64,000 bases of DNA from Hyaloraphidium curvatum SAG 235-1 (GCA_025558095.1 JAIVFI010000020.1:1-64000), one strand, 5' to 3'; positions 22,962-29,908 are shown, numbered from the stretch's first letter. Notes: generated from the letters alone by a model not told the origin. Numbers and translations: made by a program.

Positions 22962-23715
22962 CGAGCGGCCGCGGCGAGGGGTGGACGAAAGAATCACGGG
23001 GACCGCGGTCGCAAGTCGCGTGGGCCAGGGCCTGACTGGCAGCAGAATGCTCGAGATCGCGGATCCGATGCCCAATCAGCATAGTTATGTAATTCGACCA
23101 TCATCATCTCGACCTGCATAACAACGGTGCCTTTGCCGCGAATCCGCCGTGCGATCCCGGCGCGTGATCTGTTGCTGCGTGCCTCGTCGGGGCGGGCCGC
23201 GAATTGGGGATGTCCGCCAGGTCGACCGCCCATCCGATAGGAGGAACAACAAAAGCTAGTCTACTACTGTAGAAGTGGGAGCGATGTGAGGATTTTGCGG
23301 GTCCCCCCGATGGATCCGACCGCTCCCGAAGGCGGCCGATCGAGGTTCACACACACGAAGGGCGTCCAGCAGCCCATCCATCGCTCGGCCTCATCTCTCC
23401 TTGACAGCACGATCATGCGCAGCCGGCCTTTTCTCGCCTAGATTTCGGACTATTGGACCCAGCTGGGCCGAGTCAGATTTTGTTGAAGGACAGGGTCTCG
23501 CGATCGCCGGCGGGTCCCTGACCGCTCCCCTGACCTGTGGACCGCTCCCCTGTCCTTTCTCTCGGCGCGCACGGCCCACATCCGCGTGCGCGCGGCGCCA
23601 GGTTGAGGCGTCCAGGCATTGGCATTGGCTTTATTGGGGTCCGAGGTGAGCGGCGGACGCACGCCGCGGGGGAGCCGGCTCAGACGCGTCCCTCCCTCCC
23701 CCTCCCCTTCCAGCG

Positions 23716-26700
23716 ATGGCGCGCTTCCTCGCCCTCGCGGCCGCCGCGGCCCTCGCGGCTGTGCCCGCGCTGGCGCAGTCGAACATTACCATCCTCGAAA
23801 ACGGCCCGCCGACGACGTACACGCTCAACTCGACGTCGGCCGGCGGGTGGACCACGCTCGGCGGCGCGACCTTCTTCGGCACAAACAACACCGGCGGCCT
23901 GCGCTTGACAAACAACTCGTTCAACCAGAACGGCCTGGCGTTCCTCAACAGCGTCATCCCCCGCGGTGTGCTCTTCGGCGGCTTCGACCAGCAGTTCGGC
24001 TTCCTGATCGACGAGAACCGGCCCACGGATGCCTCGCAGGCGGACGGCGTCGGTTACCTGTTTGCTGTATGTCCTTTTGCGGCGTTGAGCCCCCCTTTTT
24101 TTCCCGAGATGGTCGCCTTATGTGCCATCCCCCTCTAGCCCCTCACCCAGCCCCCGAACCAGACCAATGGCGTGCCCAACCTGCTCTTCTACCCGCCGCC
24201 CGGCGCCCCCCTGATCCCGGAGGCCGTTGAGGTGCACGTAGGCACCAACGGCCGCGCCGCCAACAACGAGCCCACGGACGCCGACTTCATCGCCGTCTAC
24301 AAGAACCGCGACATCGACTGGAACAAAGTGCCCGCCAACTGCAAGCTCACGCAGCCCAAGGGCACCTTTGTCGGCCGGCCGCTCAGGCTGCGCGCCGATT
24401 ACGGCTACAATCCGGCGACAAACGGCACCTACGTCCTGCGGTGGAGCACGCCGACCAGGCCGTTCCCCGTCGACCCGGACATCAGGTGCACCAACGTGCC
24501 CATGCCCAACATCACCGGCCAGGACATATTCTACAACATCCTGTCGTCAACCGCCCCGGCCCAGGCAAACAGGCACATCATGACGCAGTTCGAAACGGCT
24601 TGTACGTGGCCTCGGATCGCCCCCCGCCGCCCAGGCTCACCCCGTCGTCCTCAGTCTGCACGTGGAACAACTCTGGCTACTCGGGCGGCAACGCCACCAG
24701 GACCCCCTTCTGCTTCTGCGGCCCCGACTACGTCCCCAACGCCGCCGGCAACGCCTGCCTTCCCCGCGGCGTGGTCCCTCCTCCCCCGCCCCCGCCCGCC
24801 GAGTCCTCGGGCCTGTCGCCCGGTGCCATCGCCGGCATCGTGATTGGGTCGGTCGCCGGTGCCGCGCTGCTGGGAGGCGGCGCGTACGCGCTGGCCGGTG
24901 CCAACAGGAGGGCGGCGCTCAAGGATGCGGAGATGGCGCCCGTGCCGCCTCTGCCTCCGGTACGTCCTCTATCTTGTTGATTAAGAGCTCTTCTGATCTT
25001 TCCCGCTGGACAGGTCGGTGCTGCTGCCGCCGCCGGCGGAGCTGGCGCTGCCGGAGCCGCGGGAGCTGCCGGAGCCGCGGGAGCCGCAGGAGCCGCAGGG
25101 GCTGCAGGAGCTGCAGGGGGTGTAAGTGCCGCGGCGGCCGCCCCCGTCGCCGCGGCCGCCGCGCCCGCTGCTGCCGTGAGTTCCTGTCCCTCTGTCTCGC
25201 CCGCACGCACCCATTGATCTGTTTTCGCCCAGTCGTCGATCGCTCCCGCCGTTGTCGGAGGTGCCGTGGGCGCCGCTGCCATTGGCGGAGGCGCCGCGAT
25301 TGCGGTAAGCTGACCGCGTTCTCGATCTCCCCGCTTGGGTCCTGATCCGCATCCCCAGGCTTCGTCCGACAAGGCCGCCGCCGCCGCCGCGGCCCCTGCC
25401 GTTTCCGCCCCGGTTGTTTCCGCCCCGGTTGTGTCTGCCCCTGCTGTGGCCGCCCCCGTTGTGTCTGCGCCCGCTGTGTCTGCGCCCGCTGTGGTCGCAC
25501 CGACTGTGTCTGCTCCGACTGTCGCCGCTGCCTCGGTTCCCGCTTCTGGGGTGAGCTTTTCTCGTCGCCGGGCGCGCAAGTTTGAGCTCATCTGCCTTCG
25601 TAGTCGTCGATCGCGCCCGCCGTCATCGGAGGAGTCGCCGGAGCTGCCGCGATCGGCGGAGGCGCCGCCGCGATTGCCGTACGTTCTCTCTTCTTTCCCT
25701 TTGCCCATGATTCGGCGTCTGATTCGTGCTCACAGGCGTCTGACAAGGCGGCCGCGCCCGTGGCCCCGGTTGTGGAAGCCCCGGTCATCGAATCTCCCGC
25801 CGCTACCGTTGCCGCGCCAAGCATTTCGGCCCCGGTCGTCGAAGCTCCCGCCGCTACTGTTGCCGCGCCGAGCATTTCGGCTCCCGTGGTTGACGTTCCC
25901 GCCGGAACCGTCGCCGCCCAGTCGATTGCGGCCCCGACCGTCGCCGCGCCGACCATTGCCGCGCCTTCCGCCAGCGTTGCGGCCGCCGCTCCCGCTGCCT
26001 CCGCTCCGTCGGCCGGCAGCATCGCGGCCCCCGTGGTTGGAGGCGTTGCCGCAGCCGGTGCCGCCGTCGGCGCTGCTGCCCTTGTGAGTCCGCTTGCTAC
26101 TTGTGGCGGTCTTTCGCTCACCACCCGACGACGCAGCTCAAGAAGGACGACGAGCCCGCTGTCTCGGCCAAGGCCGTTGCGCCCGGCATCGAGCTCCCCA
26201 CCATCCCCGGCGTCGACCTCGCGCCCCTCTCGGCGGCCCTGGGCGACCTCAAGGCCAAGCTCCCCGAGGCCGACTTCCAGGCGCTCGCGGCGCCGTTCAA
26301 GAACCTCGGCACGCCCGAGTTCAAGATGCCCGACGTGTCGGCGATCAAGGCCAAGCTCCCCGACGTGGACTTCTCGGTGCGTTGTTCGCGCGTTGTTCGC
26401 GCCGTGCCCCTTGCGTCTATGGCTAACGTAGCATTTGCAGGGCGTCGAGTCGGCGATCAAGGGCCTGAACATTCCTGGCCTGGACCTCTCCAAGCTCGGA
26501 ATCGGCGCCGGCGTGGCTGCTGGTCTCGGCGGCATCGGCGCTTCGCTCGACAAGATGGGCGCCGACATCAAGGCCGCCGTCCCCTCGGTGGACCTGCCCA
26601 AGCTCGAGCTCCCCAAGATCGACGGCGTCGACCTGTCCGGCCTCGAGGCCTCGCTCGGTGACCTGAAGGCCAAGCTCCCCGAGGCCGACTTCTCCAAGAT

Positions 26701-29318
26701 CAAGGCCGCCTTCGACGGCATCGGCACCCCCGATTTCAAGATGCCCGACCTCGGGTCCCTCAAGGCCGAGCTGCCCAACGTGGACCTGGGCGGGCTGGAG
26801 GCCTCGATAAAGGACATCAAGCTGCCCGACGTCGACGTTAAGGGCGGCCTCGGCAAGATCGGGGCGGGCATCACGGCCGGCGTGGCGGGCCTAGGTGTCG
26901 CAATCGGCGCGGGCGTGGACGACCTCAAGGCGGACGTCGGCAAGCTCGAGGTCCCCAAACTGGAGCTCCCCAAGATCGAGGGCGTGGACCTATCGGGTCT
27001 CGAGGCGTCGCTCGGCGACCTGAAGGCCAAGCTTCCCGAGGCCGACTTTGGCAAGATAAAGGCTGCGTTCGATGGCATCGGGACGCCCGATTTCAAGCTT
27101 CCCGACCTCGACAAGATCAAGGCCGAACTTCCCTCCGTTGACCTCAGCGGTCTCGAGGCCTCGGTAAAGGGGCTGAAGCTTCCTGACCTGAAGCTGCCCG
27201 ACGTCTCGGCCGGCCTGGACAAGCTCGGCGCCGACATCAAGGCGGCCATCCCGTCCGTGGACCTCCCGAAGCTCGAGCTTCCCAAGATCGAGGGCGTGGA
27301 CTTGTCGGGTCTTGAGGCCTCGCTCGGTGACCTGAAGGCCAAGCTGCCTGAGGCCGACTTTGGCAAGATCAAGGCCGCCTTCGACGGCATTGGCACCCCG
27401 GACTTCAAGATGCCCGACCTTGGCAAGATCAAGGCCGAGCTTCCCTCGGTTGACCTCAGCGGTCTCGAGGCCTCGGTGAAGGGCCTGAAGCTTCCTGAGG
27501 TTAAGCTCCCCGACGTCTCTGCCGGCCTGGACAAGCTCGGCGCCGACATCAAGGCTGCCATCCCGTCCGTGGACCTCCCCAAGCTTGAGCTTCCCAAGAT
27601 CGAGGGCGTCGACCTCTCCGGTCTGGAGGCCTCGCTGGGCGACCTCAAGGCCAAGCTTCCTGAAGCCGACTTCGGCAAGATCAAGGCGGCGTTCGACGGA
27701 ATCGGCACGCCCGACTTCAAGCTGCCCGACCTGGGCAAGATCAAGGCCGAACTCCCCTCGGTCGACCTCAGCGGGCTCGAGACCTCGATCAAGGGCATCA
27801 AGCTGCCCGAGGTGGATGTCAAGGGCGATCTCGGCAAGATCGGCGCTGGCATTACCGCTGGTGTGGCTGGCATCGGAGCCTCCATCGGCGCCGGCATCGA
27901 CGACCTCAAGGCCGACGTCGGCAAGCTCGAGATCCCCAAGCTGGAGCTCCCCAAGATCGAGGGCGTGGACCTGTCGGGTCTGGAGGCGTCGCTCGGCGAC
28001 CTCAAGGCCAAGCTCCCCGAGGCTGACTTTGGCAAGATCAAGGCTGCGTTCGACGGCATCGGCACGCCGGAGTTCAAGCTGCCCGACCTTGGCAAGATCA
28101 AGGCCGAGCTTCCGAGCGTCGATCTGAGCGGTCTGGAAGCGTCTGTGAAGGGTCTGAAGCTGCCTGAAGTCAAGCTGCCCGACGTGTCGGCCGGCCTCGA
28201 CAAGCTTGGTGCGGACATCAAGGCTGCGATTCCGTCGGTCGACTTGGGCAAGCTCGAGCTTCCCAAGATCCCCGGCGTGGACCTCTCTGGCCTCGAAACC
28301 TCGCTTGGTGACCTCAAGGCCAAGCTGCCCGAGGCGGACTTTGGCAAGATCAAGGCGGCCTTCGACGGAATCGGCACGTCCGAGTTCAAGCTCCCGGATC
28401 TCGGCAAGATCAAGGCCGAGCTCCCGAGCGTCGACCTGAGCGGTCTCGAGGGCGCTCTCAAGGGGCTCAAGCTCCCCGAGGTCAAGGTCCCCGACGTCGC
28501 TGCTGCTGCGGCAGCCGTGACGGCGGGCGCCGCCGGCCTGGGCGCTGCTGTGGGTTTCTGCGGCTCCTTCCAAGGGCATTTTCTGACTTGACCGTGTCGC
28601 TACAGGTCCAGAAGGCGGGCGATGATGCGATCGCCAAGGTCAACGAGGGCACCGCTTCGGTCACCGAAGCCGCGAACAAGGCTTCCGCCTCGGTGACGGC
28701 GGCCGCCAACCAGGCATCCGCCTCGGTCGCCGACGCCGCCAACCAGGCCCTGGGCGCGCCTTCGGGGTCGCCCGTGGTCCCCGTGGCCTCGGGCGCCGCC
28801 CTGAGCGGCCTCGCCTCGGACCCCTCGTCCCCGTACCGCAAGTACGTCGGCAAGGACCTGACCGCGACTCGCCCGCACACGGCCGCCAAGGACACGGAGC
28901 TCACCGTGGCCGCCGGCGACGTGATCCACCTCATCGATATCAACAAGGACCTCTGGGCCCAGGGCCGCAACGTCAAGACCGGGGCGACCGGCTGGTTCCC
29001 GCTGACTTCCTTCGCCGCCGACACCGGCGCCGCCAAGTCGGACGCCGGGGCCGACCCGTCCGCGCCGTACAAGAAGTACGAGGGCAAGAACCTGACGGTC
29101 ACCAAGCCGTACACGGCGACCAAGGCGTCGGAGCTGTCGGTTGCCAAGGGCGACATCAGTGGGTACCGATCGGACGGACTTTCGAAGCTTGAGCTGATCA
29201 CACCTCGCCCGCAGTCACGATCAACGAGATCAACCGCGACCTCTGGACCTACGGCACCAACGTCAAGACCCAGCAGTCCGGATGGTTCCCCCTGACCTCG
29301 TTCTCGGCCTCGAAGTGA
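23716..29318 (+). CDS. 12-exon type I membrane protein: signal peptide, L-type lectin-like domain, EGF-like knot, TM, Ala/Gly/Pro linker, AHNAK/periaxin-like repeats, 2x SH3 (~1,650 aa)
   Basis: Eleven GT-AG introns (starting about 24067, 24602, 24960, 25176, 25305, 25551, 25679, 26084, 26377, 28550, 29159) join the pieces in frame. Motifs ADGVGYLF (lectin), CFCGPDYVPNAAGNAC, GAIAGIVIGSVAGAALLGGGAYAL (TM), and two ELTV..GD...W..G.NVKT...GWFP (SH3). Confidence 0.8.
26612..28500 (+). repeat. Coding tandem repeat of 312-bp and 357-bp units
   Basis: The anchor CCCAAGATC occurs at 26612, 26969, 27281, 27593, 27950 and 28262 (spacings 357, 312, 312, 357, 312). A further diverged unit lies in the previous exon (about 26190-26376). 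Confidence 0.95.
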
Positions 29319-29494
29319 GCGAGACGAGGGTGTATTGGCTGGAGGAGTGGCTATTCCCGTGGGCACACTAGACGACCACGCAGTATACGGTATGTAGGAG
29401 ATCGGTCGAAGAAGACTGAAGTCATCATCAGCACTGCCTCTGTTCGGTGCTTCGTCTCTTCCTGGTCCATGTACGCGTTCGAGGTGACCCCGCT

Positions 29495-29622
29495 TCACAT
29501 CGCGGGCACCTTCTGCGACACGTAGTTCACCGCGTCCCCGACGGTCTTCAGCTTCTGCACGTCCTCATCCAGGACCTCGATCCCGAACTCGCCCTCGAGC
29601 GCCTGCGCGACCATCGCGAGCG
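29495..29622 (-). pseudogene. Acyl carrier protein C-terminal fragment
   Basis: TLAMVAQALEGEFGIEVLDEDVQKLKTVGDAVNYVSQK matches ACP helices II-IV. The DSL phosphopantetheine site and the N-terminus are missing. Confidence 0.75.
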
Positions 29623-29908
29623 TCACAACGGGTTGAGGATGTTTGTCTGGCTGCTCCTCTTCTACGGGCCGCCCGAGTCCATACACACGGTCATCGAGGA
29701 TGCCGGGGGCAACTGTTACAAGGGTCTCGTGAACGACGTGCTCGACATCGCGCGGTGGAAGAGGTGGATTGCCAAGGGCTCGATCGGCGGGCTGCCTCCA
29801 GAGTTGCCGCAGGAGATCATGTTCCAGTCATGGATACTGGATTTGAAGGACTCCGAAAGAATTGACCGTTCAAATGTGGATTGTTGGATTGACAAAGGTG
29901 CATCATGA
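29622..29908 (+). pseudogene. Family X copy 9, C-terminal fragment
   Basis: GLRMFVWLLLFYG...YKGLVNDVLDIARWKRWIAKGSIGGLPPELPQEIMFQSWILDLK. Confidence 0.82.

Follow-up and report, generated by a model that had tools for sequence, protein, structure and literature searches.

Results

A single spliced frame spans the locus. The window, a stretch of 64,000 nucleotides from Hyaloraphidium curvatum SAG 235-1 (GCA_025558095.1 JAIVFI010000020.1:1-64000), carries on its plus strand a gene at 23716-29318 with 12 exons and 4,974 nucleotides of coding sequence, which read as 1,657 codons and a closing TGA without an internal stop. The exons, each taken from the spliced frame, and the introns discussed below are as follows.

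23644-23711, plus strand: 5' UTR intron directly 5' of the ATG (joint 23643>23712, skipping 68 nucleotides, GT..AG)
23716-24066, plus strand: exon 1
24067-24138, plus strand: intron 1, 72 nucleotides, in frame, ending in TAG (joint 24066>24139)
24139-24601, plus strand: exon 2
24655-24958, plus strand: exon 3
24959-25012, plus strand: intron 3, from the transmembrane (TM) exon to the tail, with an in-frame TGA at 24980 (joint 24958>25013)
25013-25175, plus strand: exon 4
25233-25303, plus strand: exon 5
25358-25549, plus strand: exon 6
25603-25678, plus strand: exon 7
25736-26083, plus strand: exon 8
26084-26136, plus strand: intron 8, predicted, 53 nucleotides, GTGAGT..CAG (frame logic; in a stretch without an X1 contig)
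26137-26375, plus strand: exon 9
26440-28549, plus strand: exon 10
28606-29158, plus strand: exon 11
29215-29318, plus strand: exon 12, with the TGA stop at 29316-29318

Splicing was read from RNA-derived contigs of a single public run (X1) that are 100% alike to the locus; these are assemblies and do not by themselves prove a single full-length molecule. Of the 11 predicted coding introns, the contigs skip 10, as well as the 5' UTR intron, all at GT..AG joints (24066>24139, 24601>24655, 24958>25013, 25175>25233, 25303>25358, 25549>25603, 25678>25736, 26375>26440, 28549>28606, and 29158>29215), and the 11th is predicted. The original prediction, that separate open reading frames splice through 11 introns into one frame of about 1,650 amino acids, is borne out to this extent. 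It had also singled out the intron joining the TM exon to the repeats for an RNA check, and that joint is present in a 1,316-nucleotide X1 contig, with 163 letters on its shorter side. Because this contig crosses six joints from 24352 to 25972, splicing removes the TGA at 24980, and transcripts ending at that TGA, the case named as refuting, are not what X1 shows. We regard one expressed 12-exon gene as confirmed, with a single open frame across lectin, TM, repeats, and SH3, in which the junction of the lectin-TM half with the repeat-SH3 half is predicted. The modules are ordered as signal peptide, L-type lectin, four-Cys motif, TM helix, low-complexity stretch, seven repeats, and two SH3 domains.

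The ectodomain resembles a divergent L-type lectin. The features up to the membrane are as follows.

23716-23778, plus strand: start codon and signal peptide, amino acids 1 to 21, ending A-L-A before Q (hydrophobic N terminus)
23779-24066, plus strand: N-terminal half of the lectin, exon 1, with a Q-A-D-G-V-G-Y motif (Atlas features; hhalign)
24139-24601, plus strand: C-terminal half of the lectin, exon 2 (hhalign; paralogue identity)
24657-24758, plus strand: four-Cys motif C-x17-C-x-C-x12-C, half-EGF-like (Cys 273, 291, 293, and 306)
24813-24893, plus strand: TM helix, amino acids about 325 to 351, with R-R and a P-V-P-P-L-P-P motif after it (hydropathy peaks; paralogue layout)

Exons 1 and 2 matched no Pfam lectin model (PF00139, PF03388, or PF18483) at an E value of 1 or below. 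By Atlas features, the clusters nearest to exon 1 were Lectin_leg-like/legB (0.88 to 0.82), with VIP36-like proteins among them. Profile alignment by hhalign matched exon 1 to the C37 lectin family (92.8%, E 4e-7) and, collinearly, exon 2 to the same family (87%, E 4e-6), and exon 2 was 50% and 36% identical to paralogues. The lectin paralogues score 33 to 35 bits on the Pfam L-type lectin model, below its gathering cut-off of 78.3, and the C37 family matches Lectin_L-type_dom at 5e-8 to 2e-8. Against the PDB, the C37 profile found arcelin and legume lectins (2.7e-5), and a Foldseek search with its AF2 model (pTM 0.71) returned legume lectins only (E 6e-12, probability 1.00, TM 0.60 to 0.69 on target); the fold match is that of the family model, and the gene's own lectin domain is split by an intron. 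These comparisons indicate that the ectodomain is a divergent L-type lectin, homologous to a family whose fold is the legume-lectin beta-sandwich. Its Q-A-D-G-V-G-Y-L-F aligns to the family's G-A-D-G-V-G-F and keeps the Asp of the A-D-G-hydrophobic motif, the sugar-binding residue in lectins of this type. Of the Mn/Ca-binding set sought (Glu, Asp, Asn, Asp, and His), V-E-V-H-V-G-T-N ... D-A-D-F-I-A-V keeps the Glu and Asn, and the alignment is too divergent for the remainder; the metal-binding residues of legume lectins are not clearly kept.

Nine N-x-S/T sequons lie before residue 320 and one after it. Moreover, all six Cys of the 1,657-residue protein fall in the ectodomain, with zero after residue 372. 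This placement is counted for a type I topology with the N-terminal 320 or so amino acids outside, and the legume-lectin-like, sequon-rich ectodomain originally proposed is upheld. The EGF-like Cys knot proposed beside it stands only as a Cys motif: it has four Cys versus the six, paired in three disulfides, of an EGF-like domain, exon 3 gave no EGF Pfam match, and weak, below-cut-off matches came from paralogues (EGF_3, 4.5e-4; cEGF, 6.5e-3), covering only the C-terminal half of the models. The arrangement of Cys motif, stalk, and TM recurs in paralogues.

The tail carries AHNAK2-like repeats and two SH3 domains. The features beyond the TM helix are as follows.

25013-26083, plus strand: exons 4 to 8, Ala/Val/Gly/Pro low complexity, A 44% (composition; tandem DNA repeats; four joints)
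26137-28549, plus strand: exons 9 and 10, seven AHNAK2-like repeats (repeat register; TRF period 312; AHNAK2 matches)
28606-28842, plus strand: Ala/Ser/Asn/Gln-rich linker with 33-nucleotide repeats (TRF period 33; sequence)
28843-29013, plus strand: SH3 domain 1 (SH3_1 match; PF00018 at 28879-29001 in an own-genome scan)
29068-29315, plus strand: SH3 domain 2, split by the intron at 29159-29214 (joint 29158>29215; likeness to the first SH3)

The predicted Ala/Gly/Pro/Val linker is a low-complexity stretch of 284 amino acids; it contains three TM-like glycine-zipper motifs, and S-D-K or K-K-D-D comes after each. In all, the spacer between TM and SH3 is about 1,070 amino acids long. The expected seven or so repeats rich in K-L-P-D/E-V-D-L were found as seven units of 117, 119, 104, 104, 119, 104, and about 82 amino acids, the 119-residue form being the 104-residue form with a glycine-zipper insert.

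A HMMER search with the repeat array ranked vertebrate AHNAK2 at the top among 1.84 billion proteins (1.84e9; E 8.6e-120). Shuffled, reversed, and tiled-shuffled repeat queries scored below 8 bits versus 137 to 418 bits for the true sequence, and motif densities were at least those of AHNAK2 and about 100 times the shuffle expectation. The likeness therefore depends on residue order, and the proposed AHNAK/periaxin resemblance is measurable. The motifs F-K-M/L-P and L-P-x-V-D-L/V are common to the repeats, AHNAK2, and periaxin. Single units reached best domain scores of 17 to 27 bits against AHNAK2, with bias terms of 200 to 500 bits, and two units compared by BLASTP were 26 to 28% identical in several registers. 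Because each unit alone scores so low, this is a motif-level likeness, which may reflect either common descent or convergence. AF2 predicted short helices for two units in a weak model (pLDDT 60, pTM 0.35). No PDZ domain was matched in any exon scanned, and the N terminus is instead signal peptide and lectin.

Both predicted SH3 domains were recovered. The first matched SH3_1 at 1.1e-12 (47.8 bits versus a gathering cut-off of 22.9) as well as SH3_9 and SH3_2; the second, whose intron is spliced, is 51% identical in exon 12 to the C-terminal half of the first (E 2.2e-7). The protein ends in S-A-S-K.

The gene belongs to a lectin-TM-SH3 family. Two H. curvatum paralogues, C35 and C37, have the order lectin, EGF-like motif, TM, SH3, and the C37 open reading frame L034 shares 99% identity with the H. 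curvatum protein DFJ74DRAFT_402090. Lectin, Cys motif, TM, and SH3 are also present in P0006 to P0008, the last from an environmental sample. The family is expanded and its heads are variable. Because C35 and C37 share the architecture, L-type lectin, short Cys motif, Pro-rich stalk, TM, and cytoplasmic SH3 form a lineage-specific receptor family rather than a one-off. The original remark that the combination was not known in one protein has to be narrowed. C35, C37, P0007, and P0008 share the order with a stalk between Cys motif and TM, and their lectin halves are homologous at profile level, but they are about 500 amino acids long with a linker of about 120 amino acids and one SH3; the Ala/Gly/Pro/Val and AHNAK-like spacer and the SH3 pair are unique to this gene. 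The repeat block is common to the gene and to two genes on contig C24 that have neither lectin nor SH3, and an environmental relative retains the order repeat, glycine zipper, SH3.

Discussion

How the protein compares with known systems depends on the module. AHNAK is a cortical membrane scaffold, and the repeat unit is 128 amino acids in AHNAK and 165 in AHNAK2. Like AHNAK2, AHNAK, and periaxin, the gene has long tandem arrays of hydrophobic-Pro-acidic-hydrophobic-Asp-hydrophobic and F-K-M/L-P motifs. Unlike them, it has no PDZ, units of 104 and 119 residues, glycine-zipper inserts, and AF2-predicted short helices, and in its fungal host the repeats share one chain with a lectin ectodomain, TM, and SH3. 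Periaxin is likewise a cortical membrane scaffold, with a disordered, Pro-spaced tail (PMC7072810). The ectodomain keeps the A-D-G motif of legume lectins, and its family has their beta-sandwich, but it matches no Pfam lectin model and is uncertain at the metal site.

Plant L-type lectin receptor kinases combine an extracellular lectin, a single TM, and a cytoplasmic output module. The H. curvatum protein has the same plan, but its output is SH3 rather than a kinase, and a Cys motif and Pro stalk precede the TM. Fus1 is a type I membrane protein with a glycosylated ectodomain and a C-terminal SH3 and, by description, is a closer fungal analogue than four-pass Sho1, to which the gene had first been likened. 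That likeness holds for a membrane-anchored protein whose C-terminal cytoplasmic SH3 recruits proline-rich partners; it fails in that Sho1 has its four TM helices at the N terminus and lacks an ectodomain, whereas here a signal peptide and a 300-amino-acid glycosylated ectodomain precede the first TM. Fus1 lacks a lectin, and both Fus1 and Sho1 lack a repeat spacer and tandem SH3 domains. Finally, the best solved-structure match of the SH3 region spans both SH3s of p47phox (NCF1), with a similar short linker (E 6.3e-6). p47phox, however, organises an oxidase as a soluble protein and carries PX and autoinhibitory regions, and the similarity is generic to SH3; cooperative "super-SH3" binding is a suggestion by analogy.

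We propose, with a probability of roughly 60%, that the gene encodes a type I membrane glycoprotein of the lectin-TM-SH3 family whose tail between TM and SH3 has been stretched to about 1,070 amino acids and whose SH3 has been doubled, a putative glycan receptor or tether.

Where the tail lies is one point at which this reading might change. The TM helix originally predicted is present, but calling it the only one is unsafe: on a crude insertion scale biased toward Ala/Gly runs, the assigned TM has a summed score of 2.3 and seven Gly/Ala-rich glycine-zipper segments, which copy its sequence pattern, score 2.5 to 6.0. With these segments the topology of the tail can be read in more than one way, and part of it could lie in or across the membrane. 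Perhaps some or all of them stitch the tail into the bilayer as hairpins or spans, with parts outside, and the protein is mainly a structural tether of wall, membrane, and cortex rather than a signalling sensor. The C31 paralogue, which has N-x-T sequons beyond its second TM-like segment, and the scaffold role of AHNAK and periaxin would suit such a tether. Near-identical repeat units would then end up on opposite sides of the membrane, however, and the tail beyond residue 372 has one sequon and no Cys. Moreover, SH3 domains are, to our knowledge, cytoplasmic modules in eukaryotes, and AF2 gives the glycine-zipper inserts a pLDDT of 30 to 40. We consider a stitched tail unlikely.

Alternatively, the locus could hold two genes, the first encoding lectin, TM, and an Ala/Pro/Val tail that ends near 26083 and the second a separate, soluble AHNAK-like repeat-SH3 protein with its own start, like the C24 repeat genes. 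Positions 25973-26241 (269 nucleotides), which include the predicted intron 26084-26136, are empty of X1 contigs, and the upstream contig ends at 25972. Furthermore, in C31, the closest lectin paralogue, lectin, TM, and glycine zipper occur without repeats or SH3, and the C24 repeats exist without lectin. The upstream contig, however, meets adapter at 25972, with no poly(A) seen there. Given the 70 to 80% G+C of the gap and its end at 26242, the start of sequence repeated in later units, the break is likely one of assembly. The exon 8 frame reaches its first stop only at 26429, by which point the repeats would be read out of frame, and the exon 9 frame has no ATG before 26326, within the first repeat. 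The 53-nucleotide intron, typical in size, is the only consensus-like donor/acceptor pair uniting the two frames, and joins them exactly; an upstream gene without a stop and a downstream gene without an ATG favour its being real. The pattern of glycine zipper plus charged residues also persists across the junction. Two genes therefore seem distinctly improbable.

An intracellular cargo receptor of the secretory pathway is very improbable, for although ERGIC-53, VIP36, and Emp46/47 are likewise type I membrane L-type lectins and VIP36-like proteins are near exon 1 in the Atlas, cargo receptors have short tails with ER/Golgi sorting motifs, whereas this tail is about 1,300 amino acids long with two terminal SH3s and S-A-S-K, the family has expanded and its heads vary, and its Foldseek and PDB profile matches are to legume lectins rather than to ERGIC-53 or VIP36.

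How a stretched lectin-TM-SH3 protein would work can be outlined. The lectin head may bind a glycan, whether in the cell wall, on the cell's own surface, or in the surroundings. At the other end, the two SH3 domains, perhaps working as a unit in the manner of p47phox, would recruit partners rich in proline, for example actin regulators or the scaffold of a MAPK module. Between them, the repeat spacer may lie beneath the membrane as a flexible series of short amphipathic helices; glycine-zipper segments may pin it there, and the spacer would set the reach of the SH3 pair. A single chain would then unite a glycan receptor with an AHNAK/periaxin-type cortical scaffold, and we infer a receptor or tether that binds glycans and is read out via SH3, close to the glycan sensor coupled to the cytoskeleton that was originally suggested.

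Lectin head, AHNAK2-like tail, and two SH3 domains in one fungal protein make a design that is not known to have been described before. We speculate, tentatively, that a distinct receptor class arose in the Hyaloraphidium lineage of early-diverging fungi, in which SH3 rather than a kinase reads the lectin, and that in this member an AHNAK/periaxin-type scaffold, whether derived from an ancestor of the AHNAK repeats older than vertebrates or convergent on the same motif code, is built in and pinned to the inner leaflet by glycine zippers. If true, the protein would be the counterpart, in one chain, of the dystroglycan-periaxin type of link that runs from extracellular glycans to the cell cortex in animals.

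Gene structure and transcripts

Hyaloraphidium curvatum is a fungus of the monoblepharid lineage, and the gene at 23716-29318 (+) lies in a eukaryotic contig of 65-70% G+C, whose GT..AG introns are short, at 53-72 nt (assembly, 31.9 Mb in 55 contigs). X1 was the only public sequencing run that contained the gene's stretch (27 million letters, dated 2018 and guessed to be RNA), and its contigs, which are assemblies and not single full-length molecules, were compared over 23600-29450. In that interval 23 contigs aligned, all at least 99% alike, and eleven GT..AG intervals were skipped. The introns are as follows:

Joint 23643>23712 (+), intron in the 5' UTR, skipped in X1 contigs
Joints 24066>24139, 24601>24655, 24958>25013 and 25175>25233 (+), coding introns 1 to 4, skipped in X1 contigs
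Joints 25303>25358, 25549>25603 and 25678>25736 (+), coding introns 5 to 7, skipped in X1 contigs
26084-26136 (+), predicted intron 8, GTGAGT..CAG, 53 nt, between the frames of exons 8 and 9, inside a contig gap
Joints 26375>26440, 28549>28606 and 29158>29215 (+), coding introns 9 to 11, skipped in X1 contigs

One contig of 1,316 nt spans 24352-25972, and there the intron at 24959/60-25012/13 is spliced out, such that the transmembrane exon is followed by the Ala/Pro/Val exons of the tail. Because this single contig crosses the interval via six joints, the TGA at 24980, at which transcripts would have had to end to refute the original prediction, lies inside an intron that is removed. When the twelve exons are joined, with 26084-26136 also removed, 4,974 nt read as 1,657 uninterrupted codons up to the TGA at 29316-29318. 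Thus, of the 11 introns proposed to create one frame, ten are skipped in X1 contigs and intron 8 is predicted only. Database and fold searches were run exon by exon, and the joined model was used only for frame, hydropathy, composition and short-motif counts.

Three loose contig ends were rejected as parts of the gene. Those at 25021 and 25374 derive not from alternative exons but from a locus on another contig (C15:313068-314057) that has Ala-codon low-complexity words in common with exons 4 and 6, and that at 28818 belongs to an SH3 paralogue on contig C23. We note that a convergent short ORF resembling acyl carrier protein (29495-29686, -) begins about 180 nt past the stop codon.

Whether the lectin-transmembrane and repeat-SH3 halves are one gene turns on 25973-26241. 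These 269 nt have no X1 contig coverage in the depth table while the flanks have depths of at least 146, and the junction is without RNA support because the interval is uncovered. The upstream contig enters Illumina adapter right after 25972, and the downstream contig starts at 26242, the start of sequence that recurs in later repeat units. The gap may reflect dropout caused by G+C content, a break in the assembly or a genuine end of the RNA. The frame of exon 8 (25736-26083), if read onward, meets its first stop at 26429, by which point it is reading the repeats out of frame, and the earliest ATG in the frame of exon 9 (26137-26375) is at 26326, already within the first repeat. Moreover, GTGAGT/CAG is the sole donor and acceptor pair that resembles the gene's other introns, and a recurring pattern of a glycine zipper and then charged residues runs on across the predicted junction. 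By this frame logic, the two halves are one gene with a probability of about 0.85 to 0.9. We conclude that the gene is confirmed, apart from one predicted junction.

Ectodomain

A signal peptide occupies residues 1-21, and residues 22-320 contain nine N-x-S/T sequons and all six cysteines of the protein, as counted on the joined frame. Lectin exons 1 and 2, compared with Pfam exon by exon, reached no model, and exon 2 found no match by Atlas (language-model) features. The same features for exon 1 pointed to the Lectin_leg-like, Lectin_legB and Lectin_L-type_dom clusters (0.88-0.77), a lead only, and the top phmmer match of exon 1 in the PDB was phytohemagglutinin, but at E 0.14 only. A match of a two-sequence exon 1 profile to clostridial TcdA cell-wall-binding repeats (about 8e-5) covered residues 14-57 only and was rejected as a chance likeness of Gly/Thr/aromatic-rich strands.

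A search of the organism's own genome found paralogues of the lectin region on contigs C31, C35, C37 and C26, and the C37 paralogue has a complete ectodomain within one ORF. The C37 protein, its NCBI model P0006 and the relatives P0007 and P0008 match Lectin_L-type_dom (5e-8 to 2e-8) and Lectin_legB, and a PDB search with a C37 family profile matched arcelin-5A and legume lectins, with E values from 2.7e-5 upward. Moreover, the C37 ectodomain was modeled with AF2 (pLDDT 66, pTM 0.71), and the top Foldseek matches of the model were exclusively legume lectins (E 6e-12, probability 1.00). Finally, hhalign of the gene's exon 1 and exon 2 profiles to the C37 family gave 92.8% and 87%, in the correct order, and the alignment includes the A-D-G motif, in which legume lectins have their sugar-binding Asp; it is too divergent to place the full set of metal-site residues. 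Several independent lines agree, and we infer that the ectodomain is an L-type lectin, with its fold assigned via the C37 family. The legume-lectin-like ectodomain rich in sequons thus stands, at least by profiles and models of relatives.

After the lectin comes a four-cysteine motif, C-x17-C-x-C-x12-C, followed by a Pro7 stalk and a transmembrane helix (aa about 325-351). The motif had been described as an EGF-like knot, but it has four cysteines only, its resemblance to an EGF domain is limited to that domain's second half, and the EGF_3/cEGF matches are weak and come only from paralogues.

Tail and SH3 domains

Alanine makes up 44% of residues 373-656, accompanied by Val, Gly and Pro. This segment includes three motifs patterned like the transmembrane helix, each then followed by S-D-K or K-K-D-D. 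Residues 657-1440 comprise seven repeats of 117, 119, 104, 104, 119, 104 and about 82 aa, encoded by DNA units of 357 or 312 bp, with a glycine-zipper insert in the 119-aa form; an Ala/Gly/Pro/Val linker and about seven repeats behind the membrane are what had been expected. When insertion free energies are summed, which is a crude measure, seven Gly/Ala-rich segments score 2.5-6.0 versus 2.3 for the assigned transmembrane helix. The zippers are unlikely to span the membrane fully, as near-identical units would then face opposite sides of it, and they may insert peripherally or as hairpins. AF2 with a shallow alignment modeled two repeat units as short helices of 7-15 residues with Pro-containing linkers between them (pLDDT 70-79 in the core and 30-40 in the zipper; pTM 0.35, too weak for a fold search), and as modeled the region looks like a flexible array rather than a compact fold. 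Single-exon Pfam matches of the repeat exons to EF1_GNE and phage Collar were rejected as spurious, and a word-based search with the repeat exon returned five weak low-complexity matches only.

The two SH3 domains were found as proposed: SH3-1 matches Pfam clearly, at 47.8 bits, and SH3-2, whose coding sequence is interrupted by a spliced intron, shares about 51-60% identity with it. The best solved-structure match is p47phox, in an alignment covering both tandem SH3 domains. The SH3 pair alone has an expressed copy on C23 (75% amino acid identity, sequence in an X1 contig). That copy, a partial tandem SH3 at C23:507737-508574 (7220-8072 of stretch L027) without lectin or repeats, is directly downstream of a Sel1-repeat/coiled-coil/kinase-like fragment.

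A receptor family

The union of lectin, transmembrane helix and SH3 is not confined to the gene under study. The C35 paralogue has a lectin, cysteine motif, transmembrane helix, linker and intron-split SH3, and the C37 protein, P0007 and P0008 (from an environmental sample) have an SH3 at the end (SH3_9 at 3e-4 in P0006). The closest paralogue, on C31 (48-52% identity), has a lectin, transmembrane helix and one glycine zipper, without repeats or SH3. A word-based search with the C37 family, also as a profile, returned three proteins only, from H. curvatum and two other sources, and a literature search for lectin-SH3 receptors in Hyaloraphidium returned nothing relevant. The evidence shows that lectin-TM-SH3 proteins form a family of receptors in a lineage of fungi that has been little studied, and the architecture of the gene is a novel combination of known module types.

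The C37 ORF is 99% identical in alignment to the NCBI protein DFJ74DRAFT_402090 (P0006). The ORF in the genome, L034:247-2112 (-), and both homologues have 20 residues within the lectin domain that this model lacks, probably because an intron was called there in error. Six further L-type lectin loci were seen (C16:263033, C6:878502, C38:90920, C8:795915, C10:168350 and C32:487389), one of which (C16) exceeds the Pfam cutoff. JGI metagenome sample 3300043314 holds two relatives (stretches L035 and L036): a relative of the gene's C terminus with a repeat, glycine zipper, one SH3 and Lys-rich tail (49% identity, GC 58%), and the lectin-EGF-TM-SH3 protein P0008. Both point to an uncultured Hyaloraphidium relative.

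AHNAK2-like repeats

An exhaustive HMMER search with exon 10 (26440-28549; 703 aa) of a library of 1.84 billion proteins returned 60 proteins at E<=1e-3. Among the top matches examined, the named proteins were all vertebrate AHNAK2 of 2,800-6,700 aa (E 8.6e-120 to 4e-13), with 28-33% identity across 4-19 stretches; the remaining matches were rejected as unrelated bacterial repeat proteins (DUF4912, pentapeptide and HHH proteins). In local controls with ten AHNAK2-search proteins as targets and queries within exon 10 alone, the true sequence scored 137-418 bits and shuffled, reversed or shuffled-then-tiled queries scored <8 bits, and thus the likeness does not come from composition or repetitiveness alone. 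Moreover, the densities per 1,000 aa of F-K-M/L-P (8.9 in the gene's repeats versus 7.8 in AHNAK2) and L-P-x-V-D-L/V (10.2 versus 9.9) are similar where shuffling predicts about 0. A single 104-aa unit reached best-domain scores of only 17-27 bits against AHNAK2, with very large bias corrections, and two units aligned by BLASTP in several registers, at 26-28% identity. Internal duplication produced both arrays, and therefore the independent evidence is roughly that of one unit against one unit.

Judged from sequence, the resemblance to AHNAK2 is real, order specific and at the level of motifs, by common descent or convergence. The data do not support placing the fungal protein in the AHNAK family, however, because it has no PDZ domain and its repeat unit is of another length. 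The repeats predicted to be AHNAK/periaxin-like are thus so at the level of motifs. To our knowledge, this is the first measured case of AHNAK2-type repeat motifs outside vertebrates, and a literature search for AHNAK-like repeats in fungi returned nothing relevant. The order of repeat, glycine zipper and SH3 is kept in the metagenomic relative at 49% identity. Two large genes on contig C24 that lack an SH3 contain the same repeat block, and their short repeats resemble periaxin still more closely. These genes, at C24:506964-516333 (+) and C24:563764-567234 (-), have many exons, L-P-x-x-D-A-K-L-P short repeats and a block of about 50 aa shared with the gene under study, with no SH3 nearby; many of their six-frame matches contain one in-frame TAG, probably in-phase introns that end in TAG, as does the gene's intron 1. 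Public annotation appears to lack the repeat-region protein, as the 1.84-billion-protein library returned no H. curvatum protein bearing that region.

Proposed function and significance

The nearest functional analogues of a lectin-SH3 protein are Fus1 and the plant lectin receptor kinases. We infer that the lectin head would bind a wall or environmental glycan and that the SH3 pair would recruit proline-rich partners, with the spacer acting as a flexible sub-membrane scaffold that would set reach or cluster partners. A P-V-P-P-L-P-P motif just past the transmembrane helix may be a ligand of the protein's own SH3 domains. The original interpretation as a whole is partly supported. For the scaffold, the nearest analogue is the link between periaxin and dystroglycan (PMC7072810).

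The repeats of AHNAK and periaxin are still functionally obscure, and truncations of the periaxin tail cause neuropathy (PMC7072810). Here, an RNA-supported gene carries a repeat region without a close counterpart among the proteins searched, and AHNAK2-type motifs in a fungus could be used to ask what the motif code does physically. The 104-aa microbial unit is small and tractable, a convenient model for AHNAK and periaxin repeats. The lectin-TM-SH3 family represents an alternative to the design of the plant lectin receptor kinases.
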